Shown here piece after piece: positions 5,133 to 56,510 of a stretch of 64,000 nucleotides of DNA (positions are counted from its first letter, which is position 1; every line of letters starts with the position of its first letter). Source of the stretch: Marsupella aquatica (Eukaryota; Plantae; Marchantiophyta); contig OZ316897.1 in the NCBI GenBank assembly GCA_973895155.1, positions 8,579,832-8,643,831 on the forward strand. The letters are read 5' to 3'. A model generated the notes under the pieces. The model saw nothing but the letters and a program-made list of their open reading frames with translations, searched no databases and was not told the origin of the DNA. The position numbers were made by a program, and so were the translations under genes.

Positions 5133-5900
5133 CTAGAAGTAACAGTGGATTGTTGGACAATATATAACATAACACAAACCCTTCGCTGACTTCAGCTCTG
5201 GGGCAGTTTCAACGTACATGGTTTTGAAGCCCCTTCTCTCTATATGATATAAAAATACTGCCAGTACAGACAACTCTGGGATAGCATCATGCAACAAGGT
5301 CAAAAATCTCATCCAATATTGCTCATTCTCTGAAGGAACCATGCAATAGGACAGAATCATGACAATGTTATTAGGCATCAAGAACTGTGGCAACCAATAA
5401 CATCTGAGGATATGCTGATTTTGTGTGTGTGCCATCTAAGGCAATGAGAGGCCTACAATGTGTGTAGCCTTTCGAGAGGCTGAAGGACACACAAACAAGG
5501 TCTCAAAAGATCCTCCAGGTGCGGAATATTTTGCCATGGCAGTAGGGTCCCTCTGTAAAATATGATGACAATGACTTGGGATGAGATGGAAGGACTCCTT
5601 CTCATCACCATCCAGCCTGATAAGAGCTGTCTTTTTGGCTGCATGTGCAGTATGATACCTCACATCTGGATGTAAAATAGCTTGAGCTGCGTCTCTTAAA
5701 GCTCGAGTTTGCCTATTTTTAATGAGGATGTCAAAGATTAAAGTAGCTAAGTAATCTGAGGAATTGTGCATCCGTCTACTATGATGGTCTACAGCACAAC
5801 ATTTATGATGGTCATTGAGTTGAGTGACAGTAATAGTTTCTATCTTTGAGCTCATGATCACTCGTATTGACTAGAAACATATTTGAGCAGGGTTTTCGTG
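5133..5900 (-). pseudogene. MULE transposase remnant
   Basis: Across frameshifts and stops it reads FETLFVCPSA...DGTHTKSAYPQMLLVAT...NNIVMILSYCMVPSENEQYWMRFL, the MULE DDE-domain pattern (DGT; F/Y-x-x-V-x-x-E-N...W-x-x-FL). Confidence 0.85.
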
Positions 5901-8826
5901 CCACCACATTAATTTTGCACTTTCCTATGAAACGAAGAGAGTCCTTTTTGTATGTAGTTATTACTTGTTCTGTTGAGACCCCATGTTTCACAATTGCTCG
6001 CCTCAGTGCCTAGCAGGTCTCAAACGTGTCACCTACCTTTAAAGCACCGTAACCATGTCAGAAATTTACTGAAAAAGCGACCTGCACATAGAAAAGCAAA
6101 TATGCATCTCAGAAGCTTCAGACATAAGATCCAGCTTGAATGTAATTTGACATTGATGGATTAATAATCTGCTATAAGCCATGGATCGGCTGCTATCCCT
6201 TTCTTCTCATAAATGTATTGAAACATACTCAAAACTATAGTAAAGTTTAACTTGAGCCAAAAAGAAGAGGGAATTTATGCCCTATTTTCACCCAGAAATG
6301 CGGGAACTAAAAGAATGCACTTCTCATGATCGAAGAGGAACTGATGGAATTAGTGTGAAGCATGAGAGTTCGTTCAGAGATGAGTATAGGCCACATACGA
6401 GTTTCTGGTCAATCGAGTGGTCAATACGTAGTTGAACTATCACAGCACTCCATTCAATGCGACAAAGATGCTGAAATGACAATGTTCTTACGATAGTGTT
6501 GTACTGCAAGATGGCAATGCAGTGGGCAGGCTCTCCCCCTTTACGCAGAATGCAGCAACACTCAAAGATTTTCACATCTGAATTTCAGCTCCCATTGAAG
6601 CTCTCTCTGCAATTTGCTGATCGACACCCCGCACCACCGGCATCTCATCCGCACATGAGTTTGTTCTGTGTAGGTCTTTCGGTGTTTCCTCACAAACCCC
6701 ATCCTGGTAGATTTCCTCACGAACCCCCATCCCGGTAGATTTCCCACGAATCTACCGAGAGCAAGTCTTCGCCTCTCTTTCAAATGGAAATCCCCGCACA
6801 GTGCAGTGAGTTAACTCGACCAACTAAAAAATGTCAAACTATGACAGACAGTAACCTGGACGGAAACCGATCCAATCGTGAAGCAACACGTGACACTCGA
6901 GTTAACCCAAGTAACGGTATAGCAAAAGTGTGGCAGATTTACAAATACAGAAAAAGTAGTGGCAGTATTGTCATTTCTATCATCTTTAGTGGCAACCTAC
7001 TCAAAAGCTGTATTAGTTTATGAACATATAAACTCACATAGGACAAAAGATGGTTTGACATCTTACCCTCGGATAATAATTTTGTTAAAACCTTGAAATT
7101 CCCCGACAATCAAGGGTGACCCAACAGGTTCAACTGCCACCACAAACTTCAATAAAGTTTCTCTTAAAGACTCTTAAAACTCCTATATATACTATCAAGG
7201 GTGACTCAAGGTGTTCTTGTAATCATCATAAACTCCAACCAAAGACTTGATGGTGCCCTCTAGTAAACAAACCCCTAATAAGGCCCTTTCTTTTGAAAGG
7301 AACTTGTTGGGGCCTCCACTCCCTGCAGCCCTTGCACATTCCCTCCTACCCCACCTCCTCCATGCTTGCAACCCTCTAGAGCTTGGTACCCAGCAGCGCT
7401 TTGTCCCTACCAGCCTATTATAAAGAGTTTTGGTTTTGTTTTTTGCGGGAATGACGAAGGTCACCTTGTGTGAAGTAGAACACTCTAAAATATTTCTTAA
7501 TTAATGAATTAGTGGAATCCCAAGAAGATAATTAATCAAGTCAGAGCTATTGCTCTCATTGAGCTAAGGTTATTAGTGCTTTCAAAGTAGACAAATGCAA
7601 ATTGCAATTAGCTAATGCAATTTGCGATTAGTTTTTGGACAAACACAGTTTACATATGAAATTGTAGGGTTCACAATTGGGAAATGGTAGTGTAAATGTT
7701 TTGTTGATTGAAGAGCATGGAGTAGTGAGAGTAGGGCCGAAGAACTTGTTCCTGTGTATCCCCGAGTAGTGTAGTTGGGAACAAGGCATGGCTATAATAT
7801 TCTCCCCTGTAATCTTGTATCCCCGAGTAGGGTAGTTGGGAACAATGTATGGTTCTAATATTCCTTGTGCATACCAAAAGGCTTAGCCAAGTAGTAAAAA
7901 ATTTAAGAAAGATTCTCGCTAGTTTACAAAAAAAACATGGGCTGCTTTTTGATAGAGACCCCAATAGCCAGAATCCCATGGTTCTAAATCTAGGGAGATC
8001 TAATGGTAAAAAATAATCTAAGATAACTACATAAAAGACATTTTTAGAATCTTCTATTCACACCAGGTGGTATTTGCCACTTCAAAAAAGGAAAAATCCT
8101 GAAAAAAGGGCTGAGGGCACTAGGCTGTCTGGAGGGTTGCAAGGTTGGAGGGGCTTGGGTTGCAGGGAATGTGGAGGGGTTCCAAGGATTGGGGGCCCCT
8201 ACAAACAAGTCCCTTTCAAACGAAGAGGTCTCGTGAGGGGTTTGTTTCTCTGGAGGGGCCCCATCAAGTGTTTTGTTGTCCTAAACACCAATAACACTTA
8301 TGCTAAAACTTCCAAACTCCTAGAGCTTCTTTTTGGCCCCTTCCAATGTTACATATTGCCAAATTTCCTTCCAGAACTTCAGATCAGGTTTCCTGTTTCA
8401 GAAAATTGATTTTATCCTTTTCAAGAAATTAAAATTATTCACACTAGCCATTCGCGGGAACAGCATGACTGGGAACAAGTGGATAGGACCCGATGCAGGT
8501 TCGGAAACGGGTTCACAATTCAATTTTGCACTTGTCTTGGCACAAGAAAGAAGAAGCAATGCGTGTTTCTGCATGTCATGATGAAAACAGAATGAACCTT
8601 GATAGACTTTGACGAACTTGCACAGTACACAAACCTCAGATGTTGTGTACTCTTCTTTGCTAAAAGCATCTCACTAAGCGAGTCTCCATCTCTTACTGCC
8701 AACATACAGGAAATCTCCACGGTGAAACTCTAATTTCTTACCATAGATCGGAATGGTGGCCGTCTGCGACCCATTCTCAAGCTTCTTTCTGAGCCTCGTG
8801 TGTATGACCCAGCTGTTTCTCACGGT

Positions 8827-8963
8827 CTGACGCTCAGCTTAGTCTGGATTGTAAGCGGAAATTGCTGATCAGGTGGGCCTAAATGACTTCCAGATCTGAC
8901 ACTCAGCTTAGTCTGGGATTGTAAGCGAAAATTGCTGGTCATGTGACCTAATATGACCTCCAG
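8827..8963. repeat. Tandem duplication, 2 x ~69 bp
   Basis: TCTGAC(G/A)CTCAGCTTAGTCTGG...ATGAC(T/C)TCCAG occurs twice. Confidence 0.8.
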
Positions 8964-9385
8964 GGGTTAGCAATTACATATCATGACTAAAACTTCCACT
9001 ACTTCGCGAAGTTGACCTTCTGTACATAATGCATGGAAATCCCTCATGGTTTGATGTTATGTGTCAGCTTGGCGGAAACCTGTGTGCCAATTACTACCGA
9101 CTACTCCAACAAAATATTATTAAGTTTTCATATGCTCTTCCGCAAATATTCTGCCTGCCCATTTCAGTCGGCCACCAATCTCGGTGAGTGAGATAAGTGT
9201 ATGATTGTCGCTACAAAAATGAACTCAAAATCACAAATTATAACTTCCTGCTTCCTGCTCTGCATCTGCATGCGTTTGGGGATTTGCATACCTAGGTTTT
9301 GATCGCTAGGCCTCCTCTGATTCAACTAATCACACTGTTGGCCATGTCAGATCATACAATCCTGGCAGTTTCTATAGAAAATATC

Positions 9386-9624
9386 TTGCAATCATACAAC
9401 GCCTTGGCTCTGTAGAGAGTCGCCCTTCCAGTTCTATGCAGGGGAAGAAGAGGCTTGCAAAGTATTGCAATCATACAATGCCTTGGCTCTGTAGAAAGCC
9501 GCCTTTCCAGTTCTATGCAAGGGGGAAGAAGAGGCTTGCAAAGTATCGCAATCATACAATGCCTTGGCTCTGTAGAAAGTCGCCCTTCCAGGTCTATGCA
9601 GGGGAAGAAGAAACTTGCAGAGTA
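9386..9624. repeat. Minisatellite, 3 x 79-81 bp
   Basis: The unit GCAATCATACAA(C/T)GCCTTGGCTCTGTAG...CTTGCA(A/G)AGTA starts at 9388, 9467 and 9548. Confidence 0.9.
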
Positions 9625-9980
9625 CAGGATCTTGCCAGCTTGCTTGCTCTGGCTCCTTCAACATTGCATTAAGATTGTTATTACAGGAGCAGGCTGGCTG
9701 GCCTAAAATTTGTCATGGGGCGACTTTTATTGGTTCCTTTTGTAAAGAACGCTCATTTGACTTCTTCTGTTTTTCCTTAAGGCAGAAGAATGACCATCAG
9801 AATCTCTGTTAACATCTATGCATGGAGGGTCGAAACAACATCCAAGATAACCCTCACTACTCAAAAACAGAGCCCTCATCACAAGTCAAAGAGCAATTAC
9901 AAAATAAAAAATTTCTTGAGAAGTCAAATTATAAAGGTATCAAGGTGAGAAGACTATCAAAGAACATGGTCCACTAACTA

Positions 9981-10844
9981 CTAATTTCCAGCCTCCCACA
10001 CATAATCTACCCAAGCTAAAAGATCTTGCTCATTGAAGATAATGTCACTCTCATTTCTTTCACGTGGTCTCAGAAAAACCTTTTCAAATTCTAGGAGTAA
10101 AGGGCTGCCATTGACTTCCCTCAAATCTAGGTCTATCTTTAACTCTTGGAAACTCCTAGCAGTTCTCTGTCTGTTCAATTCCCATTCCTCAATATGGTAT
10201 ATCTTTCCGCCAAAACGTACCGAGATAATGATCACAATATTAACCTCACCTCCAGACTGCTCAAGCCACCACTTTGCATCTGTTCTTAGGTGAACTAAGG
10301 ATTCAGACCACCCTGTTTCGATCACAACAGTAGGCCAAGCTGCTCCACCTCGTCGAACAGAAAAAGGTTTGAATGCAGAGTCTCCTTCCTTAGAGGTGCC
10401 CTCAGCTCCAGTAAATCTTATGGCCAGAATAGGACAAAGTTCCAGTCCCAATCCCATTGCTTCACACTTGCCACGCATAAGATAGGAGAAATGTGCGTGT
10501 GATAATTCATGAAATGCAATAGGCATCAGTTTAATGATTAACAGATTTTGATTTCTGTAATGGCTAATCCTGACATCTTTACCTATCCGTTTACGATCCT
10601 GATCTATCTCAGCAAGCTGTAATAGAGTGACTGGTTGGAAAGAAAGATATTGCTCTCTTGTAGTACCTTGTTGCAACAAGAGGCATTGTGCATCTATAAT
10701 CTTGGACATATTTTCTATTCCATCAAATGTATAGGGCTCTTTGTGTACTAAACACATGGGTGTCCCAGACGAAGAGGAAGGCTTAGCCATAGAAATGGGG
10801 TAATTGTCGTTGGCACTGTCCAGATCGCCCCACATTGTCGCCAT
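9981..10844 (-). CDS. Fungal-type Uma2-like PD-(D/E)xK restriction-endonuclease-fold protein; intronless ORF, start uncertain
   Basis: Open frame of 313 codons (to 10922; first ATG at 10844). Motifs IIKLMP..HE, SKEGDSAFKP, WPTVVIETGWSESL..LR.DA.WWLE.SGGEV.IVIIISV and GSPLLLEFEKVFLRP match a family I recognise from ascomycete hypothetical proteins. Confidence 0.75.
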   Translation of the reverse strand: MATMWGDLDSANDNYPISMAKPSSSSGTPMCLVHKEPYTFDGIENMSKIIDAQCLLLQQGTTREQYLSFQPVTLLQLAEIDQDRKRIGKDVRISHYRNQNLLIIKLMPIAFHELSHAHFSYLMRGKCEAMGLGLELCPILAIRFTGAEGTSKEGDSAFKPFSVRRGGAAWPTVVIETGWSESLVHLRTDAKWWLEQSGGEVNIVIIISVRFGGKIYHIEEWELNRQRTARSFQELKIDLDLREVNGSPLLLEFEKVFLRPRERNESDIIFNEQDLLAWVDYVWEAGN

Positions 10845-13800
10845 CTCAACATTGCAGAAATAACCAGATTTCACCCACTTAGTAAAAAGCTCAACATTGA
10901 TAAAGTAAGAAAACAGAAACAAGAGAAGGTTAGGACTCGTTCAACCTGGGAGAAGCATCCAGAAGTGGTGGCAGAGCTAAAGGTTGGGGATCAAGCTTCT
11001 TACGCTTCCCTTCTGTAAACACCACAAAACCTGACTTCGTCAAACTAGTCTCGAAAATTCAAATGTAATGAGCGAGTGGAGGTTTTGAACCCTCAATAAC
11101 CAAGAAAGAAATCAAGAGATGGTCTCGAGACTTCAAATGCAATGGGCGAGTGGGGTTGTGAACCCTCAATAACAAAAGAAAGAAGTGGCATGAGGAAATA
11201 AATTCGCCACATCCATACTGGACGATCAGGAAAATAGCAGAAGCAAGGGATAAAATTAATAATACCTTTCGTAGTTTGCATGGACGAAAGTTTTGTCTCT
11301 TGTAAACCCGAAACTGTCTAGCTGCACCTCCCCTTACTTCACAAGTCCTTCCGTAGTTCTTCCAGGGTGTGATGGGAGAACTTGCTCTTCATCGGCGCAG
11401 TAAAGAAAGGCCTCGGGAAATATTACAAAGAGCTATAATACCACGGCACATTAACCAACACCTGAAAACCAACAGTCACAACTGTCAGCTGCATCTCGCC
11501 ACCACCAACCAGTTCCGATAACAAAGTCTTCAACTAGTCATCCGGGGAAACCTTGGCAAATCTCTCAACTAATAACATCGTTAAAGTCTGTGAATCATCC
11601 GTCGTTAACTGCCGCACTGCCTCGAATTCAAAACCATCGCGAAATTTTCTCACCACATCATTTGAAAGAATGTGCGAGCTCCCGAAAAACAGTGAAAGCC
11701 GATTAGACAGACAGTGGCGAGTGTGGGTGACAACCTCCGGATGAGGAAGCAACAAGAACCATCGAGGACAGCGGAAGGGAACGCGATTGCCAGCATCACT
11801 AAACGAACAGACTGCATAGGCATGTTCATCTCCTGAAGCTTTCGTGAAAAGGTGCTCTCTGAAGTGAGGCGGAGCGGGACGAGTTGTGGGCCAGAGATGG
11901 CTGAGTGGAGGCCGACCGCTGCAGGGCTACCGGCTGGCGGGCGTACGTCCGACGTGGGACGGGCGGCGGCAAGCCGAGCCGGGGGAGCACAGTCGTCGAG
12001 CGGGAAGGACCGAAGGAGCGAGCGTGAAGAGTCAGCACGGCTCACGGCTGACAGTGTGGTCGCCCGGACGGTTTCTGGGGATCCGGTGGGGCTGAAGCGG
12101 CCGGGGTCTGGCAGGTGCTGGCGGCCTCGCTTGCTCGAGGAGGGATCCACAGGTGCGCAGTCAGTCCCCCGAGATTGGGACTGCCTCGTAGGTGGGGAGG
12201 TCCCCCGACGCAGGGCTCTCAACGTATACGGGACGGGCCGAGTGGAGGCCGACCGCTGCAGGGCTACGTATAGGGTAATGCAGGTGTGGGCGCAGGGTTA
12301 CTAGGGCGTCTCAAACTTAAGCATTTGGAATTCCGAATGGCACCCGGGATTTCACAGTCGCGGGCCGCCCGGATCAGGTGGTCGGCCCACCGATTTGGTG
12401 ACCGAAAAGTTTTTACCGGGTTTTTTTGGTCACCCGGTCGTCCGCTATGGACTAACCCTGGGTTGGATAGGCAGGTGGCAACTAACTGAAGCAGCAGACG
12501 AGGGCGACTCGAGAATCAAAACCGAACTAGGTGGAGCACTAGACGGGACGAACACGAGAAACGAACACGAACGCGAGACTAGCCCAGACGGGACAACTGC
12601 TAAGAAACAAACACGAACTCGACATTCAACTCGAGGGCCTCCACTTTTCGTATGATTGCGTGGATCAGTCTGTTTCTGTGCTCTCGATTCGGACGCAGAA
12701 AGCAGGAGGACGAGGAGGAGCAGCAGCAAACCTCTCTGTCGCGGGTTCTCTATCGCAATTCTGCGTCAAGGGAAAGGATTCTGGCTGTGAATCCGGGAGC
12801 TATGGAATTCGAGGATCCATGAGCAGGAGGAGAGCGATTCTAGTTGCTGGAAAGGTTTAGGGCGTGATGGTGGCCGGTCGATGACAGAGTGATCGTTGTG
12901 ATGTCGAATTTGGAATGGCTGCTCCACCAGGTGAGAGATAATTTCGAGGGCTGCAGGGGATTAAGGGGTTTCTCGGTTGCGTGAATCCCCTTCGAGTGTT
13001 TGAAGAATAATCTATCCAGGGGATCTAGTTTCCTGTCTCTTTCGATGAAGTTTCTTGTCTCTTCCGATGAAGTTTCCGCCCTCTGTGTAGTGGTTTGCTC
13101 TTCAAATTGCCTGCATAAATGTATGCTTGAAATTTCTGGAGAAATGAACCTTAATGGCAGCTTTACGATGGGCCGTATGTGCTAAACTTTCCACGCCTGT
13201 TCAATTTCTTTGTGCGCAGACGTTAAGGCGGGTTGAGAGTGAGCGATACAAGTGCTGGTCTGCCCGAATAGATTGAGATTTTCGTCGTCGTTGAGCTGAG
13301 ATTACATTAGCTGTGGTGATCAAAGATGGCGACAGAGAGAGCAGCAAGATGCTTTTGCAACCACGGCCACGGGCGCGCCTATCACCTTCGAGCGCCCTCT
13401 TCCCACCGAGCTCAAGTTTGCAAAGTCATGTAAGTAGAGCTTTTCTTTGGCAAAGTTATTCGAGTTTGAACCTCGTTGTATCATTTTGCATTAATGTCTG
13501 CAAGTTAATTAATTAGCCCTTAGATTAGACAGACAAACATGTGTCCCTAAGATGTTTTTCTCATAATGAAATTTATGAGTGAGACGAGTAGCAACATGTA
13601 CCTGGCTGATGTCGAGCATTAAATTCAAGTTAATTTTAAAATGGTCCTTAGACTGGTACTGCTCCATCTGCAGTAGCTAGTGGAACTTCATGACGATCAT
13701 CTACGCGTTGCCTTCTGGACAAGAGGAGCGTCTAGGGGGGTACCTCACTTGATCCTCATTTTACCACATTATCGAAATTACATCACCGAAAGCTAGAGCC

Positions 13801-13906
13801 CAGGGTAGAAGGTCAAGACTGTAAGCAAACAAGGAACATCCTAGTTTAATTGGGTAATGACAATGTCCTATCGTGAATTGTGTTTGCAGTAACTTGATCT
13901 GACACT

Positions 13907-15450
13907 ATGCCTCGAGTTTCACAACGACAAATACAGCTCAGGGCTGTAAAACAGAAACTTGAGCTTAACATTGCCCTCCTCAGCGACAGTGATGAGTCTG
14001 ACGAAGGTGAGAAGGTGTTTCATAAGATGCCTGGACAACTGAAGTGTGCAGGGATTGGAAATTTCAGTAATGAACTGTCTGATGATAGTTGCCTCCAGCT
14101 TGATTCATCTGGAGACAGTGACCATGACGAGTATGACCAAGACGACACAAGACCTGAGGACTTGCTAGAGTTGTATTTTGTGCTATATAACACCAGGTAT
14201 TTCATGCCTCGTCATGTGAGTCTGAAGTCCAATGACTTTGCCACTCAATTCTTCCATAACCTGCCAGAACTACTTTTCAGGCAACTTACAAGGATGAATA
14301 AGAATTCCTTTTTCCATTTGCTTGACTTGGTATCGACTCATCCAGTCTTTCAGAACAGGTCCCAATTTGAGCAAGCTCCTATAGTCAGGCAAATGGCAGT
14401 TTGCCTTGACCGTCTTGGGCATGATGGTAACGGGGCTTGTCTTAACCATATGATCCCTACCTGGGGTGTAAGTACCGGTTCTTTGGTGAATTTTTCGAAA
14501 CGATGCTTCTGTGCACTTGAATCTGTTCTTGCAGACCAGATCCAATGGCCAACTAGGGATGAGCGTCTTCAGCTGAGTGATGGTTTTGCCAGACTTGGAT
14601 TCCCTGGATGCATTGGTCTCATAGATGGGTCTCTCCTACCTCTTGCACAAAGACCTGCTCTCCATGGTGAGTGCTATTACGACAGGAAGTCCAGGTACTC
14701 AGTTAATGCTCAAGTGGTTTGTGACAATCGACGCAAAATCCTCTTCATGTTTACAGGTCTGTGTTGCTCCTCACTTCATAACCAGTGCTTGTATTCTGTC
14801 ACTGGCATGCTCTTTAACCATTCAATTCCGCTTAGCGTTTAATGTCTTTATCTTGACTTTGTTACAAATCACTCCTTACAGGAATGCCAGGCTCCTGTAG
14901 TGACCTCACATGTGTGAAACGCTCCCCACTATTCCAGTACTGCAATGGAGTTGGTGGAACACTTCTTTTCGATGAAAATCAGTACCTGCTAGGTGACAGT
15001 GGGTACCAAGCTCTTCCCCACTTGGTCTGCGCTTTTAAAAGGTCTGACTTCTGTCAAGACAAGGAGGACTTCAATACTTGCATTGCAAAGTGCCGGGTCA
15101 CAAATGAGCACTGTATAGGGGTACTAAAATCCCGTTGGCATTCACTGAAGGAGGTCCGCACTCAATTGAACAAGAGTAAGGACTCTCTCTGGATGATACG
15201 GTGGGTTTCCTTGTGTGGCAAACTGCATAATTACGTTATGAGCATGAACGACGAATGGTCTGAATCTGACATGGAAGAGGATAATTGTGATGAGCCCCCA
15301 GCTGTAGTGGAGGAGGCAGACATAGTCCCAGACCCTGCACGTTCCTCAAGGCGGAGAACTGCTGAGGCTGGTCACGCTATTTTACTCAGGGTTATGGACG
15401 ATGCTCTCACATTCTACCGCCAACCAGGAGGATTTTTGCACCATGACTGA
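13907..15450 (+). CDS. Harbinger (DDE_Tnp_4 / HARBI1-like) transposase; exons 13907-14756 and 14882-15450, ~472 aa
   Basis: FRQLTRMNKNSF, GFPGCIGLIDGS, YYDRKSRYSVNAQVVCD, spliced TG|MPGSCSD, YLLGDSGY and RVTNEHCIGVLKSRWHSL. The GT-AG intron joins in frame and the catalytic acidic residues are present. Confidence 0.93.
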
Positions 15451-17224
15451 AGAAATAGCTTTACAGTGCTATTGTCTAGGAAACAGGAGTGTTCCTATGT
15501 TGGGTTATTCTGTGGAGCCCGAACTTGTCATTTACTAAAGTTGATTGTTTTTTAAACTCGATTTCCTTCTATTGTGGAGAGGAATTGATAAACAATTACT
15601 TGTCTATGTGTTCAGACAAATTGCATTACAACCTCCGTTGTACCCTAAGATTCATTATCGTCTCTTTTCTACTCGACTGTGTGAATTATGTGAAGATGAA
15701 TTGTGTGAATTATGTGACTCTCTGCTGTGCTCTGAGTACCTAGCTCTTGTTGAGTGACTTGACTTGGAATCCTTGAGGCTTGATCGTTTCTCAGACGTGT
15801 TACGCGCACACTGTTGTCGTAATTGTTGATCATCGCGTGCACACTGTTGTCGTAATTGTTGATCATCGCACTGTCTCACTCTGGACCCTAAGCAATCGTT
15901 CCGTAAGGAATTGGAGAGGTGTCAGATTGTTGGGACTCTTTGCTTCGGTTCTGGATCTAGCTCTTGCTCCCCAGTTATTGCGCACAATGTTGTGATAATT
16001 TGCTTTTTGTCTCTCAAGCACCCTACGCAGCTTGTTTCTCCATGGAATTGGAGAGAGGTCGGGTTTCGGGTTTAGCCTGGATTCTGGTCGGGCGACTATG
16101 GCGACGCAGTTCGTTTCGATGATATGTGGAAGGAGCTGGCAATGAAACGCCTGAGAGAGCAAGGAAGAGGTATTTCCTACGATGCAGAGCAATTCACACT
16201 TCAGATGGCCGCCGACCTTTCTGCGCGGAAGCGAATTGTTGTTAGGGAATGTCTACAATGTAGTTGTGTTGTTGGAGATCTTCTAATGCATGATTGGAGC
16301 CCTGACAACCTCATGCGGATTGATGACCAGTGCCGGTGATGTGCGCAATTCATTTAACAAGGGGTACAAAATTATGCAGTTAATTATTCGACAGGGATTG
16401 GAGTTTGGGCTAACTTGTTGGCCTTCAGTTGTGTTTGAGGAGGAGAGTTCAATGCATTCGTCGATGAATCCAGCCTCGGACCTGAGATGTAGGAGGTGAA
16501 TCCGTTTATGTCACTCTGTATCTCCCCTCTTCGTATAGCTCAGGATCGGATTATCAGATATGAGGACCGAAAGGGATGTAAAAGACCCCTTGACAAGAAC
16601 GTCACAGCGACGAAGGACGCTGTCGAATATCACCAACCTTTCTCTCTCCGCCAGTTGGGCCAGCGATGCTCGAGAGGGTCTGAAGGCCAAGACCCCAAGC
16701 AAGACACTTAGTTTCAACGAGTCTCAGCACGGACCAATCGATCCCCAGCAACATATCAAGGAAACTAAGGAGTAGAAGTGCACAAAGGCGACATTCAATT
16801 GGAAACATCGTAATGGACGAGGACTGGAATGATTCGACCAACGTGGACAGTAGAAGCCAAAAGGATGGCGTGAGGAGGTCAGACTTAAGCAGACGGCGTC
16901 CGGCAGTCTCGAAAGAAAGTGGTGGATAATTTAAACCTGATTTGAATATCCACATTCCTCATGGAAGCAGGGAACGAAACAACATGAAGGCAGTTATGAT
17001 GGCAACGGAGCCTTAAAATTTGAGAGCCATGAACAAAAGTAGTCTACGGTGACAGTGGAGTTCCTGAGAAACAGGCATCGGCCTGGAGGAGAGTGGTGTA
17101 AAGTTCCTGCGTCTAATCTGCTCAAGTGCTTGGCTTAATTACGGAGAACTATTCCCCCCTGAAGAATGAACTAAGTACTCACCATCGAATGAATCTACCT
17201 CTACTCTAGTGTACTGATCTACAC

Positions 17225-19364
17225 CTAATCTAGGTCGATTGAATCACCATCTTGTTGGTGAAGCCCAGACTCGGGATGTGTGGTGGAATCGGACATTGGA
17301 TTCATCGCTGCAGTAGCACAGAGAACCTTCGGAATTATCCCAAGGAGGGTTTGCATCTCATCACATGTTCTGTTTGTCTTGATGAGCTCTGTCAACAATG
17401 CAAGTGTCTGTTGAGAGTTAATACACCGAAGTTGATGATCATGCTCCACTTTTGCCTTCTTTGCTTCGTGCAATCTGGTGGATCTGTCCCTATCTCTACT
17501 TTCTCGTGCTGTGTTCTCTCGCAATTCATTGGCATCTCGTGCAACAGCTTCTCTTGCCTCCCTTGCTTCTCTGGCAGCAGCTTCCCTGAACTCTTTTCGT
17601 TCCCGCATGTCCTCTAATCTCCATTTATCCTTTGCTTCGATGATCTGCTGCTTAAACACATTTTTCTCATTCAACTTCTCAAGGTAAACTTCGGCCAAAT
17701 TAGGCCTGGATGTAGCTTGTGAGGGAACTGCCCTCCTTGGTGTTCCTCGTCGTGGGCCGTGTGGTGTTCCACGAGTTGACTGAGGCAAAGATCTGGGTGT
17801 TGCCTGAGAAGCATCGGGAGATCCTGTTCTCAGTGGTGTTGGCTCAGGTCCCTCTGGTCGAAGATAACCATGCTGTGGAGACACATCTTCTGTTGATTCA
17901 GGTTCCTCTGGTCGCTCTGAAAAATCATCCACGGGCTGTCCATCAAGGCAGGATTCAGTCCTACATGGCATATTTGTAGTGACATCTGCAATCATAAATT
18001 CGAAGTTAAATACCACAATCTCCACCCGACAGACCCTAGGCTGACCTTCTTCATCGGCCACACAGCAGAGGCAAGAATCTACGCTACCATCCGCAAATGC
18101 TGGCATCCATCAGTGACAAGGCAAAATAATTATCTACTCCATTTTCTGACCAGCTAACTACGCAGCTCAATCCGTGATGGGTTGACGGTATTCGGCTTGA
18201 ACATTGAGCTTCTACATTGATGCCATGTTAGAGGACCACACCCATTCAGACTCTGGTATATATTTCAACCTCTCGAATAGACCCATTCTGAGAGGAGGAA
18301 AACATGGCTCGAGGGCCCAACGAAAAGAGATTAGCTAAGATCAAAGAAGATTGAGAGGCACGATCAAAGGGCTAGGGAGATTGTTGTAGAGGGTCTAGAG
18401 TCCGTTTGAAGACTTGTTCTAAGATCTCTGACTGATTAGACACAAAAGATCGCAGCCTCTGCAAATTCCTCTACAGCACATTTGGAGATCGTCCCTAAAC
18501 AAGAATTATTTGAAGTATATAAAAAACTACGCCAGAAGGTCAAGCAAATAGACATTTCCTTACTATGCCTGAGAAGCGACTGGAACTCTGGACATGACTT
18601 CTTCGCTGTCTAGTACATCTAACTACGCAAATATAGACGACTACTCCAATCCAGGAAAATCTGGGGGCTGCCGATGAGCTAAAACAATGTTGATAACCTC
18701 CCTGTTACCTGATACGATAGTTCGCAAATGCCATATGAAGGGTTTCTCCTCGTCTCTTACAAACCAAGAGTTGCAGACCATAGTCGTTAAGTCAGACATT
18801 GAATTTGTTACCTGATGGCGTTGGAGCTGCGATGTGTGGAATTTCCTCAGCTTCACCACCATCATCGTCATCGGAGCCCTGATCCACAAATATTTCGGAA
18901 TGTCCAGGCAATCCAACACAACCTGTGCTAGGCGGGGACACATTCGCCCTGTGCCCATACAAGGCATGCATCCTCTCAAAATGAGGGCAGATTTTGTCAA
19001 GTTTGGCTTCGATAGTAATCCCCGCTCTTATTTCTTCCATGGTAACCCCAAATCCTGAGTCTCGCTTCATACCTAGAGCTTCCTTGTATTTAGCGACATA
19101 TCTACCAAATCGTTTACCCAGGTTGTCTCCATTTGCTACGAACGATGCAAAGCCTCTTGACTGAATCCAAACAAGCATCAGTCTAAAAACTGTTTTCTTA
19201 TTTGGATGCTTGGTGGCTGCTCCCTTATCACGCACTCTGTCTCCTCCGTTCAGCATTGCAAAATTATCACCTTCCTCCAGCCATTCAACAATCAACAATA
19301 AGTTTGCCGGTGTGAGTTTGCGCCCTTCAGAGCTCCCTGCCTGGGTTGCGGGAGTAGTCACCAT
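17225..19364 (-). CDS. Harbinger second ORF (Myb/SANT-like DNA-binding N-terminus, coiled-coil C-terminus); exons 19364-18812 and 17985-17225, ~437 aa
   Basis: IVEWLE..DNF, RFGRYVAKYKEA...SGFGVT.EE...GITIEAKLDKICPHFERMHALYG.RANV.P. The phase-1 donor CAG|GTAACA joins the phase-1 acceptor TTGCAG|AT. The tail is E/R/A-rich. Confidence 0.75.
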
Positions 19365-19968
19365 GGCTGGCAATTCGTGAATGTGCACTGATTGGGAATC
19401 CTATGCTTCTTGACGCTCATCAAACAGAGCGCGTTGTCTTGAACCCGACTGAGGAAGCTCCATGTTCCTGCTATGTATCCTTGTGTTGTGTGATTCTTCG
19501 ATAAATCTTCGAGGCTGAATTCTTGATTTCAAATCAGACGCTCCTCTTAGTGCAGCCGCGGCCCGCGGGGATGTGCCACTGAGGATTGAGGAAGACGCTC
19601 CTCTCAGTGCAGCCGCGGCCGTGAGCAAGTCATTCAAACGGAACCCCTACGTGGCACTTAAACACATTTGATAAACCCAGGTTTAACCCGTGCCGGGACT
19701 CCTTTTAGGTGCGAGATAAAGTTCAGACCCCCGGTTTTTTGGGACCCGATTTTGGGTACCGGTGGTCAATATCGGGCGGCGACCAGAGACATCCGGGTGA
19801 CCGGAAGGAGTCCTGTAACGCGCAGGGTTGAGACGCCCTACTAGACCGTAACCTTGCGTCCGGAATATGAAAAAGAAGCTGACCGGCGGTAGCCGGAAAA
19901 CTTCTTTGAATATTCCGGGAGCAGGTTACAGTCTATAACCCCATCCTAGACCTGCACTAGCGTACGTA

Positions 19969-20081
19969 ACTCCTGCCCGGAAAGAGGTTATCGGTTAGAC
20001 TTTTCAGGACAGCAGATTATGACTATAGCAGGCCCCTCCAAAAATGGTTATACACCGGTAACCTCTTCTCCTGACAGGAAT
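19969..20081 (+). repeat. Cassette B1 (113 bp)
   Basis: Lies between TACGTA sites. Reverse complement of 24301-24413, with about 12 differences by eye. Confidence 0.9.
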
Positions 20082-20087
20082 TACGTA

Positions 20088-20238
20088 CACTAATGCAGGG
20101 CAGGGCTGGGGTTATAGACCGTAACCTGCTCCCGGAATATTCAAAGAAGCTTCCCGGCTGCCGCCGGTCAGTTTCTTTTCATATTCCGGACGCAGGGTTA
20201 CAGCCTAGTAACCCTGCGCCCAGACCTGCATTACCCTA
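20088..20238 (-). repeat. Cassette A2 (151 bp)
   Basis: Lies between TACGTA sites. Six differences from 24420-24570. Inverted relative to A1 (12271-12302 plus 19843-19962). Confidence 0.9.
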
Positions 20239-21138
20239 TACGTAACTTCCTGGCCTGACACACCTGGCAGTCATAATCCATGGATGGAACTCTGTAATCA
20301 TGCAACGGAAACATATAACCTCCCTACGGAAAATGGTAATTTTGGACGGAAACTTTATTCCATTGAGATTTTGAATCTTCCTTCCATCCATTCCGTCCAT
20401 TTTTCCAGCTGTCGGTGCTAGAGTGGAACATCCGTCATCCCTGGGAGATAACAGCTTTTTGTGGTAAGAGTGAACATCAATCATTCGATCATGCCTGGAT
20501 GAGCTTTCTGTCCTTATGGGTATTGTGTCCTCATCCATAGGGTTCTGTTCTTTTAGAGTTCACTCTGATGAGGTCCATGGCACTCGCGGAAACGGAAAGT
20601 TAAAGCAACGAAAGAAATCAATTGAGACATACAACAAAAATTTGATGAAGGGAAAATACAACAGTAGGCAAGCAGGCTCAAGCCCTCCGGTTACCGCATT
20701 GCGCTAATTCTGAGACCGACCAGAAACTCGGCTTGGAAACTGGACAGCAAGATCGACTGAGAGTAACATAGATGTAGACTCGCTAATAGCCACAAGAGTT
20801 GACACCCTGTGCTCTAACCTGAGCGAATGCGGAACGCTATGAGAAGCTTCATAGCACAATTATAATTAAGAACTTTAGAAGAGACTAGTTGCAGGAGATT
20901 GAAAGCAAGCGCAAAACGAGAGACATTGACATAAAATATTCTTCAACTTTATTGAAAGGGGATCTTTTTTTATCAGCGCCAAATGTATATTACTCGGAAA
21001 TCTTGGAGCGAAGTGATACAAACAATTAAACAAATGGAAATGTTGTGAATCCACTGGCAACGAATAATTACTGGTGGAATTCTATCAGAATCTTACAAAG
21101 TAAAATCTGTCAGGCTATCTATTGAAGTCTGTTGTCTA

Positions 21139-23589
21139 CTATGTAGATCCTATGTTCTCCTTGTCCTCGTCAGTGCCTGCATGCAAAAGCTTGAATGTAA
21201 CGTTGCAGTTGTGGAAAGAATTCCCTGTCATATTATTCCCCACATATACATTCTGCCTCTTGCATGGCTGTGACATTCGTTGGTACATATCTGGATCCTT
21301 CTTGGCAATTTCCCCTTCCCAATCAATACCGTCATCAGTAAAAGCAATCTGCTGCGGTACATTGCTCAAATCCAACAGCTGGGAAGTACTTGATTTAGTG
21401 GACTCCTGCCCCGACTCCTGCAAACACAGACCACCATAAATAAATTAATAGCATATTATTTTCGTCACCCAAACCTGTCAATGATAAGAAAGAAAACTGC
21501 ATGCTCGGAAGAAACGTGACTCACCTCCCTTCCATCCGTCAGAGCTACCTGAAGACTAGATTTGTTACTGAGCCTATCGATTAGAGGCTTCAGTCCCGCA
21601 GTCGACCCCACAAGTTCCTCAGCCACAAATTGCTTACTCACATGGGCCAATGCCTTTTCATAATCCAAACCAGGATTAGCAGATACGAGTGTAGCAGCCT
21701 CCATTTTCAAAGCTTGAGTTCAATCGTATCTTGAATAACCTCCAGTGGTGTGATGACCAGTTATCAGCATGCCAATCTCATTAGGGACGCCCTTGGCAGC
21801 CATCCTGGTTATAAGCGTACTCCTTCCACTACGATTTGAAAACAAATCTCCTGGTAGTCCTACCAACATCAACATATTCTTTAGCCATTTACCCGTTGTC
21901 TCTCGAGCCACTTTATGAACTTTATTATACCATACGTTCCCAGCAGGATTACAAATAGCTTGCATATATAGGTCAGGTTTGTTGCACTCCCCTTCAGGTG
22001 CCATATGACGATGATATTGCTTCGTTGTCAACACAAAATCTGCCTCATAACTATGGTAAGTTTTGCGGAATTGCTCCTCGTTATATTTCTTTAACGAATA
22101 CGCATTGTTTTTTGACGTCCGCTCCTGAAATCTGCACCAAATTGTGAGAAAGATGCATAGAGACAGATCAATCAGATCACATCAATACATAATAACTTAC
22201 CAGCAACGTACAAACAGCCCTCTAGAGCTGTACTCACTTCACGTATTCTCTGCCTGTCTTGTCAAGACAGACAGTGAGATCATTTCGGTGAAGCTCGTAG
22301 AGTTCTTGCCCTCCACGAATGCCCATTCGAACGAGGCAGTAAAATGCAAGGCACTTTTGGCATCTGTAAGAAGAAGTGAGCTGATTGTCGATGTCAGCCA
22401 AGATGGCATTCTCATGAGCTTCTGTCAAAGTATAAACCTGCATAAACCAATACATTGAAGTCAAAATCTAAACCACAAAGCGCTGCGTAGGCACATAATT
22501 TTCCTGCTCCCTCAGCCTTAGCTGCTAGAGCCGCGAATGATCGAGCTAGCAAGGAGTGAGCAAAGTAGGATTGGGTGACCTCACTCCCTCGACTGAACGA
22601 ACCGTTCGCCACCTGTAACCCTGTTGCCATTGTAACCTAGTACCCAAACACAGACTTTGCGTGGGACTTTCCTGCTCGGCTTGCACAGAAGCAGCCGCAG
22701 AGGCGAAGCAAAGCAAAATGGCAGACTCAATCCCAATGGACACAAAAACGTGATGAAGCACAGCTACAAGTGAACAAATTGGTCGAGATGGATGGGATTC
22801 AAAAGAAGATAAACAAAAATAGTTGTACCTTCTACCTCGGTAAGTTCACTCTATCTTTGGCGCTCTTCGTGATAGCTGCTTTCAAAACCATTCTGGTTTT
22901 TGCAAATGTAGGATGTGAATTTATATTGAACTCTCTGTCAACAAGAAATAATCCTTCCCCTCTGAGAGACCGAACGTCACTTGCTCGTCGGATAATTCGA
23001 TTGTAACCATTCATGAGATTCATTAGACTAGAAGACGGATACGACTTACCGTTTGTTTTCTGTACTCGACAAAACAACTCACTTAAAAGCTCATTTAACC
23101 TAGGCAATGGCAAATCACCGAGACCAATGCTCATATCCCAACCCACTCCCTTGCGCAACATGTTTGCCCGTTTCAAAGCCCATTTATCATTCCATTCTGA
23201 AGGTAATTTTTTGTTTCCTCTGCCAGCCTCAAGCAAAATAGGGTCGGGAAGCGCCCGAAGCCCTGACAAATTCACTTCCACGTCTCCTTGATTGTGAGGA
23301 ATAACATCTACAGTATCCATCAAGTTTGAAGCCACATGGACCGAAGTTGAATCTCTAGAGACATCGTAAAAAATGCTAGCCATATTAATGTATCAAGCTC
23401 TGTCTCCTCGCCAGCAAGGTCTTCTAGGAATAGAAATTCACTCTCATCCCCATTCCACTCAGGACCACCTACGGAGCCTCCGTCACTCAAATGCTCTTCA
23501 ACTGTCTCACTGATCTCACAAACTCCTTGAACATCCATTCCACCACTTGCTTCCGCCATGCTGACGGATTCAATATTACCTTCCTGCAT
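21139..23589 (-). pseudogene. Crypton-type (DUF3504-like) tyrosine recombinase; 4 exons (~23589 or 23383 to 22829, 22437-22238, 22131-21525, 21417-21139)
   Basis: LNELLSELFCRVQKTNGKSYPSSSL; MGIRGGQE (catalytic R); spliced YVK|FQERTSKNN (K); WY; SNRSGRSTLITRM...GV...ITGHHT..GYSRY (HxxR position, H, Y); C-terminal FHNCNVTF. GT-AG introns are in phase. In-frame stops at 22832-22834 and 21720-21722. Confidence 0.88.
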
Positions 23590-24137
23590 GACAAACTCAA
23601 TAGACTCTGTGATGACAGAAAACGAAACTAAACATTTTTCTTGGATAGTCATCTCAATAGTAGCGAACAACAACATAAGCTTGGAACATAAGTTGAAGCC
23701 TGAAATTCAAATGGATTTTGCTGCAACTTGCAGAGGTACCCCGTAGTTGCAAGATTTCACTCCTCAATCCTCCCAATCGGGTTTGCTGCAACTTGCCGAA
23801 CTTATCCATTGATGGAGCTAGCGCCATCACCAACGATTTTGCGATCCAGTTTGAATCCACATTCCCCCGAGCACATTCAAATCATCAATACAACCGCTGT
23901 GCATCTGATGTTGGAACACAGATTCTTGAAGAAAGTATCCGCCTACTGGAGGAAAGTCTCGGAAGAAAGTGTCGCTTCTCGTCTGCATGAATTCAATCAA
24001 AACTTGACAAACAAACAAATGACGCCCCGCGCCCGCCTCTTCTTCACTTTCGGCCATTCAGGGATGCTATTGACCTTCCTTCTCATTGGCCAAAATGACA
24101 CTAGCCGGTAGCCAATACACCAACCTGAAACTACGTA

Positions 24138-24294
24138 GGTTAACTACGATCTCGGCCGTCCATTACCGAGGGTGTACCGGCTCTCCCCGGCTCCTCCAGG
24201 ACCTCTCCCGGCTGACGCCGGTCGAGGTCCTGTCAGAACCCCGGTCGAACCTCTGTACACCTTGGTAACGATCGTCCAGACCGTAGTTATCTTA
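24138..24294 (-). repeat. Cassette C (157 bp), a diverged A-type module next to the recombinase gene
   Basis: Lies between TACGTA sites. Imperfect inverted ends ggtTAACTACGATCTC and taagaTAACTACGGTCTGG show the same 3-nt/5-nt offsets as the A modules. Confidence 0.75.
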
Positions 24295-24300
24295 TACGTA

Positions 24301-24413
24301 AATCCTGTCAGGAGAAGAGGTTACTAGTGTGTAACCATTTCTACAGGGGCCTGCTATAGTCATAATCTGGTGTCCTGAAAAGTTGAGCCGGTAACCTCTT
24401 TCCGGGCAGGAGT
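24301..24413 (-). repeat. Cassette B2 (113 bp)
   Basis: Lies between TACGTA sites. Inverted copy of B1. Confidence 0.9.
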
Positions 24414-24419
24414 TACGTA

Positions 24420-24570
24420 TGCTAATGCAGGGCAGGGCTGGGGTTATAGGCTGTAACCTGCTCTCGGAATATTCAAAGAAGCTTCCCGGCTGCCGCCGGT
24501 CAGTTTCTTTTCATATTCCGGACACAGGGTTACAGCCTAGTAACCCTGCGCCCAGACCTGCATTACCCTA
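24420..24570 (-). repeat. Cassette A3 (151 bp)
   Basis: Lies between TACGTA sites. Direct copy of A2. Confidence 0.9.
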
Positions 24571-24870
24571 TACGTAGGGCGTGCGGTGGCGAGCGGAGCC
24601 GGCAAGCACAGGCGTCGAGTGGGAAGGAGGGAGAGTGAAGAGATCAGCACGGCTGACAGGGTGACAGTGTGGTTGTCCGGGCGGACCGGGCGGACCGGGC
24701 GGTTCTGGCGATCGAGTAGAGGCCGACCGTTGCAAGGCGAATGGCTGGCGGGCGTACGTGCGACATAGGGTGCATGGCGCCGGTGGCGGCGAGCGAAGGG
24801 AGCACTGGCTTCGAGCGAGAAAGGAGTAACAGTGAGGACCGTTGCTGGCGATCTAGTCGGGCTGAAGCAG

Positions 24871-26694
24871 CATCCAAAGAGACGAGTCCCTGGAACAGCA
24901 TTAACTGTACCTCGGGACTCCCTCAGAGCCTACCGGAAGGAGCACCCTGAGGTTCCCCTTTTTGCACCCATCTCTACACTTTTCAGGGCATGACCTTACA
25001 CTCGCAGCCCCTGCTCCCTCTCAATTAGAGACTTAATTCAACATTCTTATCCCCTCTTGTGTAGTGCTTTTTTTCCCTTGCATCTGTTTGTGGGAGTGTG
25101 TTTAAATTTCTTGGACTCGATGGAGGCAATCGTTTGATAATAGCTGACATTCTATTTAAATTTCTTGGACTCCATGGAGGGTTCCCGGGTTGTCCCGGTT
25201 TTGAATAAAATAAAATAATTCTTGGACTCCATGGAGGCGATATTGACAGTAGCTCACACATTTTTGACCCGCTTTGCAAAGTCCGGCACCAGTCTAGTTT
25301 TAGTTATTTATTTATGAGGGGTTTATTATTCAGTGCAAGATCGCCTGAGCTCAAACTCTTGCCACTAAATTCTTCCTCCTCATGTTGTATTCCATGCCTT
25401 CCAGATAGGTCACGAATGCATTCATGACTAGCTCCTAATTGTGCCTAACTTTGTAACTTTAGTGTATAGAGGTCCAAGGAGCACAAACACTAAACTCAAA
25501 AGAATACACCATTGCTCATCCCGAAACCTGGAAAGGTGAGAAATTAAAAAATTATCACCTACTCATAGGGCTAAACTATTGTAGAACCAACTTCCTAGGA
25601 AAACCAATTTTCAATTCAATCATCAAATTGGATATTGAAACAATTTCGCTTTTGAAAGTCAGTGTAATGATGAATATAATAGCAGTTTTTATTTTCTCTT
25701 CTTTAATGCTTCCCGAATTTCTCCACAGTAGTACAGTAGAGTTTTACAAACGTCACAAGGCTACGAATTGACTGATGTTTATAACTTCGATTCTTCCTTG
25801 AGCACTTCATCAGTCAAATGTTTTTTAAATTGGGTATTTTAGTATATCAACTCCATTGATTAGAGCTAAATTTAAAAAGAAAAAGAAATGGTTCCCCATT
25901 TTTCTTTATTCTAAGGCTCGAGGAGTAAGTATGACTACTGTAGTTTACATATGAAATGATTATCTCCATTTTTTTTGAATTAGATAAATCATTTTGGTTT
26001 CAACCCCCTTGTATATTACATCTGAAATATATATTAGTATGGTTTCAAAAATGCATGATTACCGACGCAAAGTGCTCAGGCTCCCATAAAGGTTACAAAG
26101 TTAGGCACAATTATGAGCTAGGCATGAATGCGTTGTTACCCATCTGGAAGGCATGGAATACAACGATGAACAAGTAAGGATTTAGTGGCAAGAGTTTAAG
26201 CTCAGGTGATCTTGCACTGAATAATCAACCCTCATAAATCAATGACTAAAACTAGACTGGGGCTGGACTTTGCAAAGCGGGTCTAAATGTGTCAACTACT
26301 GTCAAATGATTGCCTCCATGGAGTCCAAGTTTTTTAATTTATTTTTATTTTTTTCAAAGCCGGGACAATACCCGGAAACACTCCATGGAGTCCAAGAAAT
26401 TTAAATAGAATGTCAGCTACTGTCAAACGATTGCCTCTATGGAGTCCAAGAAATTTAAACAAACACTCCCACAAACAAATGCAAGGGAAAAAGGCACTCC
26501 ACAAGAGGGGATAAGAATGTTGAATAAAGTTGTCTCTAATTGAGAGGGAGCCAGGGGCAACGAGTGTAAGGTCATGGCCTGAAAAGTGAAGAGATGGGTG
26601 CAAAAAAGGGAAAACTCAGGGTGCTCCTTCCGGTAGGCTGTGGGGAGTCCCGAGGTACAGGTAATGCTGTTCCAGGGACTTGTCTCTTTGAATG
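24871..26694. mobile_element. Non-autonomous foldback element with ~600-bp inverted arms
   Basis: Starts CATCCAAAGAGACGAGTCCCTGGAACAGCATTA and ends TAATGCTGTTCCAGGGACTTGTCTCTTTGAATG. Arm similarity runs to ~25460 and from ~26090. Flanks are AAGCAG and AAGCGG. Confidence 0.85.
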
Positions 26695-55795: not shown

Positions 55796-56510
55796 TACCT
55801 GAGCATTTAAAAAGGACATCTCGAATGGCGAACAACTTACTCGCTTTTACAGCCATTCTGGCACAGACCACAAGAAAGGGATCACACTAATATGACCAAT
55901 TACTACATCTCATTCATGGTCCAGGCATATTTTTTGCAACATTTTTTTTATTGCCTTTGGGCTTCTTTGTTACTCTTTGGGTCTTAGTTTTGTCTTTGGA
56001 ATCGTGTCTCCTAGAGTCCTAGTTGGCGTTTTTTGTTCCTTGCTATATATATACAAGTGAAACTAAAATATGTGGGCGGTGTTTGTTCTGTGCTATATAT
56101 ATACTCGTGAAACTAAAATATGACGTGTAGATGACCATTTCAATAGGGAATCTTTGAATGGTGTGAGAAATATTCTTTTTTATTGGCAGTTGGGCACGGA
56201 CCACAAGAGAGCGATTGGGCCCGAGTAATAATAATTCCATGGTGAAAGGTAGGCCTGATTACTACGTACCCACGGGTCCAGCATTTTTGCAACATTTTTA
56301 TTGCTGACCGAATGAGGCGTACATGGACATTTCAAAAGGGAATCTGGACTGTGGAAATTTGATTTACGGGCAGTCGGACACCACATGAGAACCGAGTAGT
56401 AACACACTTCTAAGGTGAAAAGTAAAAATAATTTACTACGTACCATTCATTGGTCCAGCAATTAACATTTTCACTGCTGATCCAGCGAAACAAAGCTTGA
56501 GGCGTACATG

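Follow-up and report, generated by a model that had tools for sequence, protein, structure and literature searches.

A stretch of 64,000 nucleotides from the liverwort Marsupella aquatica (GenBank assembly GCA_973895155.1, contig OZ316897.1, positions 8,579,832 to 8,643,831 of the forward strand; here called the window) contains an intron-bearing tyrosine-recombinase gene within an array of short modules that are bordered by the palindromic hexamer TACGTA. We interpret the locus as one autonomous transposon of the Crypton type, with mini-elements composed of an A and a B module (AB) stacked on both of its ends at TACGTA, and we assign this interpretation a probability of about 0.72. The array is best read as a stack of four mobile units at one host site and not as a single integron- or shufflon-like device. 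The autonomous unit is a hairpin module, C, together with the body that carries the recombinase gene, and A and B together form a non-autonomous family of their own, which follows the same plan. The locus adds the AB mini-element family, the site grammar shared by A and C, and the stacking of units at TACGTA.

Module map and site grammar

The hexamer TACGTA occurs 15 times in the window, whereas 4.7 occurrences are expected, and none of 100 shuffled sequences reached 15. Eight of the hexamers belong to the array (positions 12265, 19963, 20082, 20239, 24132, 24295, 24414, and 24571). When a nested PIF/Harbinger-type transposon that splits module A1 is taken out, all eight fall exactly on the borders of seven modules, which follow each other as A1, B1, A2, body, C, B2, and A3 (Table 1). 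The lengths from hexamer to hexamer are 152, 113, 151, 3887, 157, 113, and 151 nt, respectively. Repeat finding and BLAST of the extracted modules gave identities of 96% for A2 and A3, 90% for A1 and A2, 88% for A1 and A3, and 90% for B1 and B2, and the similarity between module copies ends at the hexamers. A-type modules alternate with non-A modules along the array, and the same end of A, a2, joins both ends of B. Thus, the eight borders, the module sizes, the alternation, the joining of A to either end of B, and the limit of homology at the hexamer are all as the initial annotation, made from the sequence alone, had described them. It had counted about four further hexamers in the window, whereas seven are present outside the array, where they represent background. 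The eight array hexamers do not record eight independent events, because A is present three times and B twice. Each of the eight kinds of module end (a1, a2, b1, b2, c1, c2, body 5′, and body 3′) terminates at a hexamer.

No further copies of A, B, C, or the body were found by BLAST in the rest of the window. Two pairs of background hexamers, at 56263 and 56437 and at 35771 and 36091, proved unrelated to the array. The first pair is part of an unrelated tandem repeat (56263–56442) with a period of about 174 bp, every unit of which holds TTACTACGTACC.

Read on the strand of the gene, the four units of the array are A3>B2>, C>body>, A2>, and <B1<A1. Contigs with 100% identity cross from the body through C to B2 in three sequencing runs of two studies (records 15, 23, and 30). 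Therefore, the array is not an assembly artefact, a possibility that had been raised in the initial annotation.

Table 1 Features of the array and its surroundings, in positions of the window
Feature	Position	Strand	Description
Host left flank	11850..12264	.	GC-rich degenerate repeat; neighbouring copy has native TACGTC at the homologous place
A1, left part	12265..12303	+	Outer end a1 with TACGTA at 12265–12270; hairpin module of the inverted AB unit
Nested PIF/Harbinger-type transposon	12304..19838	+	Splits A1; DDE_Tnp_4 open reading frames at 13907–15450; perfect 11-nt terminal inverted repeat GGGCGTCTCAA
A1, right part	19844..19968	+	Ends in TACGTA 19963–19968 (inner end a2)
B1	19963..20087	+	113 nt between hexamers; inverted ends of about 35 nt (TACGTAA.TCCTG...AGAGGTTAC); forms one AB mini-element with A1, inverted relative to the recombinase gene
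A2	20082..20244	-	Solo hairpin module, 96% identical to A3; outer end a1 meets the 3′ end of the body at TACGTA 20239–20244
Body of the autonomous element	20239..24137	-	Between TACGTA 20239 and TACGTA 24132
Tyrosine-recombinase gene	21139..23560	-	Intron-bearing; coding pieces and motifs inside the body
C	24132..24300	-	Hairpin module built into the element end that lies upstream of the gene; imperfect palindrome of 157 nt with TACGTA on each side
B2	24295..24419	-	Forms the upstream AB unit with A3; oriented like the gene
A3	24414..24576	-	Hairpin module of the upstream AB unit; outer end a1 (TACGTA 24571–24576) meets the host repeat
Host right flank	24577..24900	.	GC-rich degenerate repeat colinear with the repeat unit of the left flank; next copy has TACGTG

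Modules A and C are full-length imperfect palindromes, which match their own reverse complements at about 76% and 70%, respectively. Their single DNA strands are predicted to fold into one long hairpin, with z values of −6.7 to −11 relative to shuffled sequences, C-like modules of two related loci (L004 and L001, described below) included. The centre of module B is not palindromic and is flanked by inverted ends of about 35 nt. A is homologous to C (z of 9.1 in global alignment), and C aligned to the C-like modules of L004 and L001 with z values of 13–14. The alignment of A and C displays a common centre, GACCGGCG.CAGCCGGGA, and common TACGTATA.G.TAA ends. In an alignment fold, 32 of 67 pairs stay paired through changes on both sides, and the dyad symmetry of A and C is maintained by compensatory changes. 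Modules A, B, and C do not contain a conserved open reading frame (ORF), and a search with a 52-aa ORF inside A, used to seek other copies of A, did not find a homologue.

The half-sites were compared by reading outward from each hexamer. The outer arms (a1 and c1) are separated from the hexamer by a 5-nt spacer (TAGGG and TAAGA), which is followed by the arm TAATGCAGG in A and TAACTACGG in C, whereas the inner arms (a2 and c2) have a 3-nt spacer. This combination of a 5-nt outer and a 3-nt inner spacer is kept in A, C, L004, and L001, although the arm sequences differ. The inner arm always meets an end of B or the 5′ end of the body, and the neighbour of the outer arm is either the host or another unit's outer end. 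The ends of B and the ends of the body both begin with TACGTA-A.T..CTG and carry a TTACCGG-type motif 24–27 nt from the core, which is CTACCGG at the body 5′ end of this copy. In addition, GGTTAC is enriched in A and B, with 13 of its 36 sites in the window located within about 0.9 kb. The homology of A and C as full-length palindromes, the compensatory changes, and the conserved asymmetry of the spacers are new points, and the palindromy of A and C is absent from the initial annotation.

Two candidates relating to these modules were rejected. Derivation of B from this body by internal deletion is not supported by significant similarity. A hairpin-telomere (protelomerase-like) function is at odds with palindromes that are bounded by the core and not centred on it, and with the observation that A always shows B the same end, without flip-flop.

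The AB family in public contigs

Contigs of four public runs from two studies were placed on positions 19750–24750 at 85% likeness. In run X4, the depth, which is a sum over contigs and not a copy number, was 5300–8900 in the bins of A and B, about 40–230 in the body, 143 in C, and 34 in the host flank. The other runs repeated the contrast between A and B on the one hand and C and the body on the other, and the excess of A and B was roughly 30–200 times. Dozens of distinct contigs hold variants of A or B. AB is present in large excess and is the predominant unit, and we claim no more than this from depth.

Among the best 24 of 512 rows of loose contig ends, the best-supported break points are located at 20241, 20245, 20246, and 24573, corresponding to end a1, and at 20085, 20086, and 24297–24299, corresponding to end b2, and none of these rows places a break point at an A–B junction. 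The loose flanks at the break points agree with each other at only 0.4–0.65, and therefore the flanks differ between AB copies. Some of the breaks come after TAC followed by AT, which fits CpG decay of the hexamer, and the most frequent changes are C>T and G>A. In a diverged copy of the body (record 16), the match breaks off at 24297, which belongs to the outer hexamer of C; therefore, B does not follow C in that copy. The initial annotation had proposed TACGTA as a crossover core, and the module borders together with the contig breaks support its role as a crossover or target core. A fixed A–B long terminal inverted repeat (TIR) with breakpoints unrelated to TACGTA, an outcome that the initial annotation had regarded as contrary to its proposal, is not what the contigs show. 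The alternative of a plant basic leucine zipper (bZIP) A-box as the explanation of TACGTA was rejected, as it leaves the module borders and the contig break points unexplained.

The break points also bear on the question of whether the whole 4.8-kb array is one native transposon, which has 280-bp A+B inverted repeats as its termini, moves only as a whole, and uses the internal TACGTA copies as binding-site architecture. A1B1 and B2A3 indeed make a 217-nt inverted repeat with 89% identity, and its joined outer ends would generate a perfectly palindromic site, ...CCTGCATTACCCTA TACGTA TAGGGTAATGCAGG.... We consider such a transposon unlikely, as contig depth over A and B far exceeds that over C and the body, the contigs break at the unit ends into many flanks, and the body copy in record 16 terminates with the outer hexamer of C and has no B. 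Furthermore, the relatives L004 and L001 lack A and B, and the supposed TIRs are only 88–90% alike, compared to 96% for A2 and A3.

AB could alternatively be an unrelated family of miniature inverted-repeat transposable elements (MITEs), moved by a DDE transposase that prefers and duplicates TACGTA, with its proximity to the recombinase gene caused by coincidence or a shared target taste. MITEs are often foldback-like, and the observed sharing of hexamers would also result if a palindromic target were duplicated over 6 bp. The two ends of the AB unit, a1 (TAGGGTAATGCAGG) and b2 (A(T/A)TCCTGTCAGGAG), are not inverted repeats of each other, which counts against a DDE-type MITE. A is homologous to the built-in C module and follows the same rules for the 5- and 3-nt spacers and for the inner arm facing B. 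Judging from contig depth, three AB-type units against one low-copy element are far beyond chance for a family of such size. We regard the independent MITE family as highly improbable and retain AB as a probable dependent of a Crypton-type element.

Recombinase gene, autonomous unit, and relatives

The coding pieces of the recombinase gene are located on the minus strand at about 23560–23400, 23383–22832, 22464–22234, about 22105–21723, and 21423–21139, and the introns between them have canonical GT donors. The exons were analysed one by one. The 183-aa exon has 71 relatives in a library of 1.84 billion proteins, 29 of them with E values below 1e-10. Alignment with longer relatives identified the motifs IRGGQELY (Arg), ERTSKN (Lys), NRSGRST, GHH, and GYSRY (Tyr), and the family alignment agrees at IRGG.ELY, ER.SKN, xSGR, GH, and Y.RY. 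Pfam searches with single exons of this copy gave no match, and those with the relative P0056 gave weak, below-cut-off matches to DUF3504 and Phage_integrase. Comparison of the family profile with sequences from the PDB did not identify a recombinase, whereas a fold search did. The AlphaFold model of P0056, which has pLDDT values of about 80–95 over most of residues 190–470 with short dips to 55–75, has Cre as its first match (E 5e-5, probability 1.0), and further matches are QRICH1 (DUF3504), Tn1549 Int, and Xer. The protein family has a Cre-like fold. No match to reverse transcriptase, RNase H, or gag was found among the ORFs tested, and the 3.9-kb body does not contain another long ORF.

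The gene of this copy contains a premature TGA at 21720–21722 (minus strand), directly after GYSRYD, where the relative P0019 has an arginine. The reading frame past the TGA is still conserved (TQALKMEAATLVSANPG...), and the stop codon looks like a recent nonsense change from CGA to TGA. This copy, with the stop codon after the tyrosine motif and the PIF/Harbinger-type insertion within A1, is probably dead, and the conserved frame suggests that it became so recently.

The simple form of the element is present in L004, a locus on a 12-Mb contig of a related genome (GCA_965154635.1), which contains a 591-aa spliced gene of the same family. In the numbering of that locus, TACGTA at 9474 is followed by a 152-nt C-like palindrome, TACGTA at 9632, the body, and TACGTC at 13853, and the body has 35-nt inverted ends (9633–9667 and 13823–13857). 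In L001, from the same genome, a C-like palindrome leads through TACGTA to a truncated gene. Neither the L004 nor the L001 element contains A or B. In all three loci, which come from two genomes, C lies next to the body and keeps the same orientation; therefore, it is a built-in end module and not a cassette. The division into an autonomous unit of C and recombinase and a non-autonomous unit of A and B, which had been suggested in the initial annotation, is confirmed by independent data, namely by the plain C-plus-body element of L004 and by the depth excess of A and B with breaks at the hexamer.

The remaining relatives provide additional observations. An extra TACGTA in L001, 250 nt upstream of the C-like palindrome, bounds a stretch (8970–9220) that is unlike A or B and may be another module type. 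L003, a 1391-nt contig of SRR18067352 from a related species, matches body positions 738–1312 and 2093–2626 at 74–78% identity, with 206 nt in place of the 781 nt of the window; it seems to lack the introns, and L005 (SRR6371231) looks similar. Should SRR18067352 be an RNA run, it would show transcription and splicing of the family in that species. Contigs L002, L003, L005, and L006 are short and do not include the ends of the element. A distant family member, P0070 (603 aa), corresponds to an annotated 7-kb gene at one locus in four assemblies of Marchantia polymorpha (L008–L011; GCA_003032435.1, GCA_009936355.2, and two more; gene at 6001–12984). Neither TACGTA nor A, B, or C modules were found within 6 kb of this locus, and P0070 could be a domesticated copy or an old element. 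The gene model P0052 (790 aa) fuses pentatricopeptide (PPR) repeats (residues 109–165) with the N-terminal region of the recombinase (344–452), probably as the result of a gene call running through an inserted element.

The initial annotation had framed the locus as integron- or shufflon-like. In its active form, such a cassette switch would have the recombinase shuffle the TACGTA-bounded modules, with order and orientation varying between cells or individuals. The palindromic core has no directionality, A stands alone once (A2), one end of A meets both ends of B, and the hairpin modules resemble attC sites in size and imperfect dyad symmetry. One contig each in X4 and X5 joins an end of A to an end of B (joint 20241 to 24296), skipping the body and C. 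This joint contains six extra letters and has only 23 letters on one side, too few to place it, and it may represent a tandem AB pair elsewhere, as any such pair could produce it. The modules do not contain genes, C is fixed beside the body, the well-supported break points in the best 24 of 512 loose-end rows do not include the A–B junction, and the same arrangement was found in 100%-identity contigs from runs of two studies. The gene of this copy also has a premature stop. An active cassette switch is thus very unlikely, and the integron-like framing was abandoned in favour of stacked mobile units.

Host site, accretion history, and known systems

The host flanks of the array are a GC-rich (57%) degenerate repeat, units of which carry GCGTACGT(C/G), and they are colinear with a neighbouring host repeat unit that has a native TACGTC. 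Tandem Repeats Finder did not detect a clean host tandem array. The initial annotation had recommended a search for an empty site, and 0 matches with up to 3 mismatches were found in the window.

The nested PIF/Harbinger-type transposon is not part of the recombinase system. It inserted in the loop of a GGTTAC-N6-GTAACC dyad of A1, and its removal puts A1 back in register with A2 and A3. When the GGGCGTCTCAA TIR is taken as its end, the transposon is flanked by a 5-nt duplication, TACTA, at 12299–12303 and 19839–19843. The target-site duplication usual for the PIF/Harbinger superfamily is 3 nt long.

Based on the order of the modules and the Goodwin (2003) model for Cryptons, a history of the array can be proposed. 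A unit would leave as a circle and integrate by strand exchange across the 6-bp core common to the circle junction and a TACGTN target, with cleavage inside TACGTA, so that the core would be regenerated on both sides of the insert. The end of an integrated unit, which consists of the core and one cognate arm, may be a better target than a random TACGTA, and later units would thus land against earlier ones. This recombinase or a close relative would drive AB. The joints B2/C (b2′.c1) and body/A2 (body3′.a1) are unit-to-unit joints of the circle-junction type, and B1–A1 is an ordinary AB unit that lies inverted. For solo A2, the simplest explanation is that a tail-to-tail pair formed and the AB unit then lost its B module when two TACGTA copies recombined. 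Repeated integration into the end sites of earlier units is the simplest history of the array. The initial annotation had offered integration or inversion as the origin, of which repeated integration is retained; an inverted isoform of the locus was not seen among the contig joints of the four runs, although contigs drop rare variants.

Several observations weigh against a Crypton-type element with dependent AB units. The interrupted host unit lacks about 22 nt around the target that its neighbour has, and therefore the pre-insertion site is uncertain. Excision, a circle, or an empty site was not observed in contigs, which cannot show rare forms, and rarer breaks at A–B junctions may occur beyond the best 24 of 512 loose-end rows. 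The contrast in abundance is measured in summed contig depth. The arms of A and C differ, with about 9 of 14 positions alike, and B does not have significant similarity to the ends of this body beyond short motifs (z at most 2.2). AB may rely on another, unseen autonomous element with an A-type hairpin. The body of this copy lacks the TIR present in L004. Finally, the first motif position is occupied by Arg/Lys and not His, and recombinase activity is predicted from the fold and motifs.

The hairpins A and C may themselves be the real substrates of the recombinase, recognized as cruciforms or single-strand folds like attC, with the conserved asymmetric 5/3-nt internal loop beside the TACGTA stem picking the strand or core and the modules behaving as orientation-free excisable cassettes. 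We consider such a mechanism rather unlikely. If true, it would represent a eukaryotic counterpart of structure-specific tyrosine-recombinase systems.

The proposed accretion resembles that of tandem integrative elements at a bacterial att site. In CTX-phage and genomic-island arrays, successive integrations reuse junction sites, and the resulting arrays are head-to-tail with one core per junction. In contrast, the host of the array described here is eukaryotic, two types of unit are mixed, and one unit is inverted, which a palindromic core would allow. Integrons (IntI, attI, and attC) similarly place a tyrosine recombinase beside an array of units that end in imperfect palindromes and have a short conserved core. 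The attC sites also have a conserved asymmetry through extrahelical bases, comparable to the 5- and 3-nt spacers of A and C. Unlike integrons, the array lacks gene cassettes, attI, Pc, and the IntI-specific insertion, its host is eukaryotic, and each of its palindromes, predicted to fold as a single strand, makes up an entire module with the core at either border. DIRS, Ngaro, and PAT elements also combine a tyrosine recombinase with repeated A and B end modules (split direct repeats in the order A1...B1 A2 B2). They differ from the locus in encoding reverse transcriptase, RNase H, and gag, which are absent here, and the A and B copies described here are separate high-copy mini-elements and not halves of the repeats of one element.

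Cryptons are the closest known system. They have terminal direct repeats of 4–6 bp, taken as recombination substrates, and abundant non-autonomous derivatives (Kojima and Jurka 2011, PMC3212892). The active Chlamydomonas Crypton, CryptonF-1_cRei, has CACCG ends, targets CAYCG, and rearranges DNA between its copies and target sites (PMC9977147). As in Cryptons, the only gene of the element described here encodes a tyrosine recombinase and has introns, reverse transcriptase and other retroelement genes are absent, and non-autonomous derivatives far outnumber the autonomous copy. The direct repeats match a near-identical target, which is CAYCG for CACCG in Chlamydomonas and TACGTC or TACGTG for the 6-bp TACGTA here. 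The array as a whole, like every unit in it, begins and ends with TACGTA, L004 is bordered by TACGTA and TACGTC, and host units carry native TACGTC or TACGTG. Published Cryptons have been described as elements without TIRs (PMC13465315) or long repeats, whereas this lineage has the palindromic module of about 150 nt and, in L004, the 35-nt TIR of the body. The absence of TIRs or long repeats is a descriptive trait of published Cryptons and not a mechanistic requirement. Non-autonomous Cryptons such as CryptonI-1N1_RPro and CryptonA-1N1/N2_OL of medaka are short like AB, outnumber the autonomous element, and presumably borrow its recombinase (PMC3212892). They differ from AB as internal-deletion derivatives that share long, near-identical ends with their master and lack terminal repeats, whereas what AB has in common with the adjoining element is limited to the architecture, the core, and a diverged hairpin.

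The literature searched does not list land plants as Crypton hosts, and no paper on land-plant Cryptons or on such end structures was found in it. No class of eukaryotic DNA transposons is less well understood than the Cryptons, and their recombination sites are essentially undefined beyond the 4–6-bp repeat. The locus and its relatives provide a conserved site grammar, which includes a palindromic 6-bp core, arm offsets of 5 and 3 nt, a hairpin module, a subterminal TTACCGG-type motif on the ends of B and the body, and repeated GGTTAC in A and B. The natural high-copy mini-element and the stack of units showing reuse of the core make the Goodwin model testable on plasmids, and they offer a candidate plant-derived pair of recombinase and site. 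AB would also account for a family of repeats in this genome that has probably escaped classification so far. The element departs from published Cryptons in three ways: its built-in end module is a hairpin-forming palindrome of about 150 nt, the core is present a second time inside the element, and a family of mini-elements copies the two-part plan of the element.

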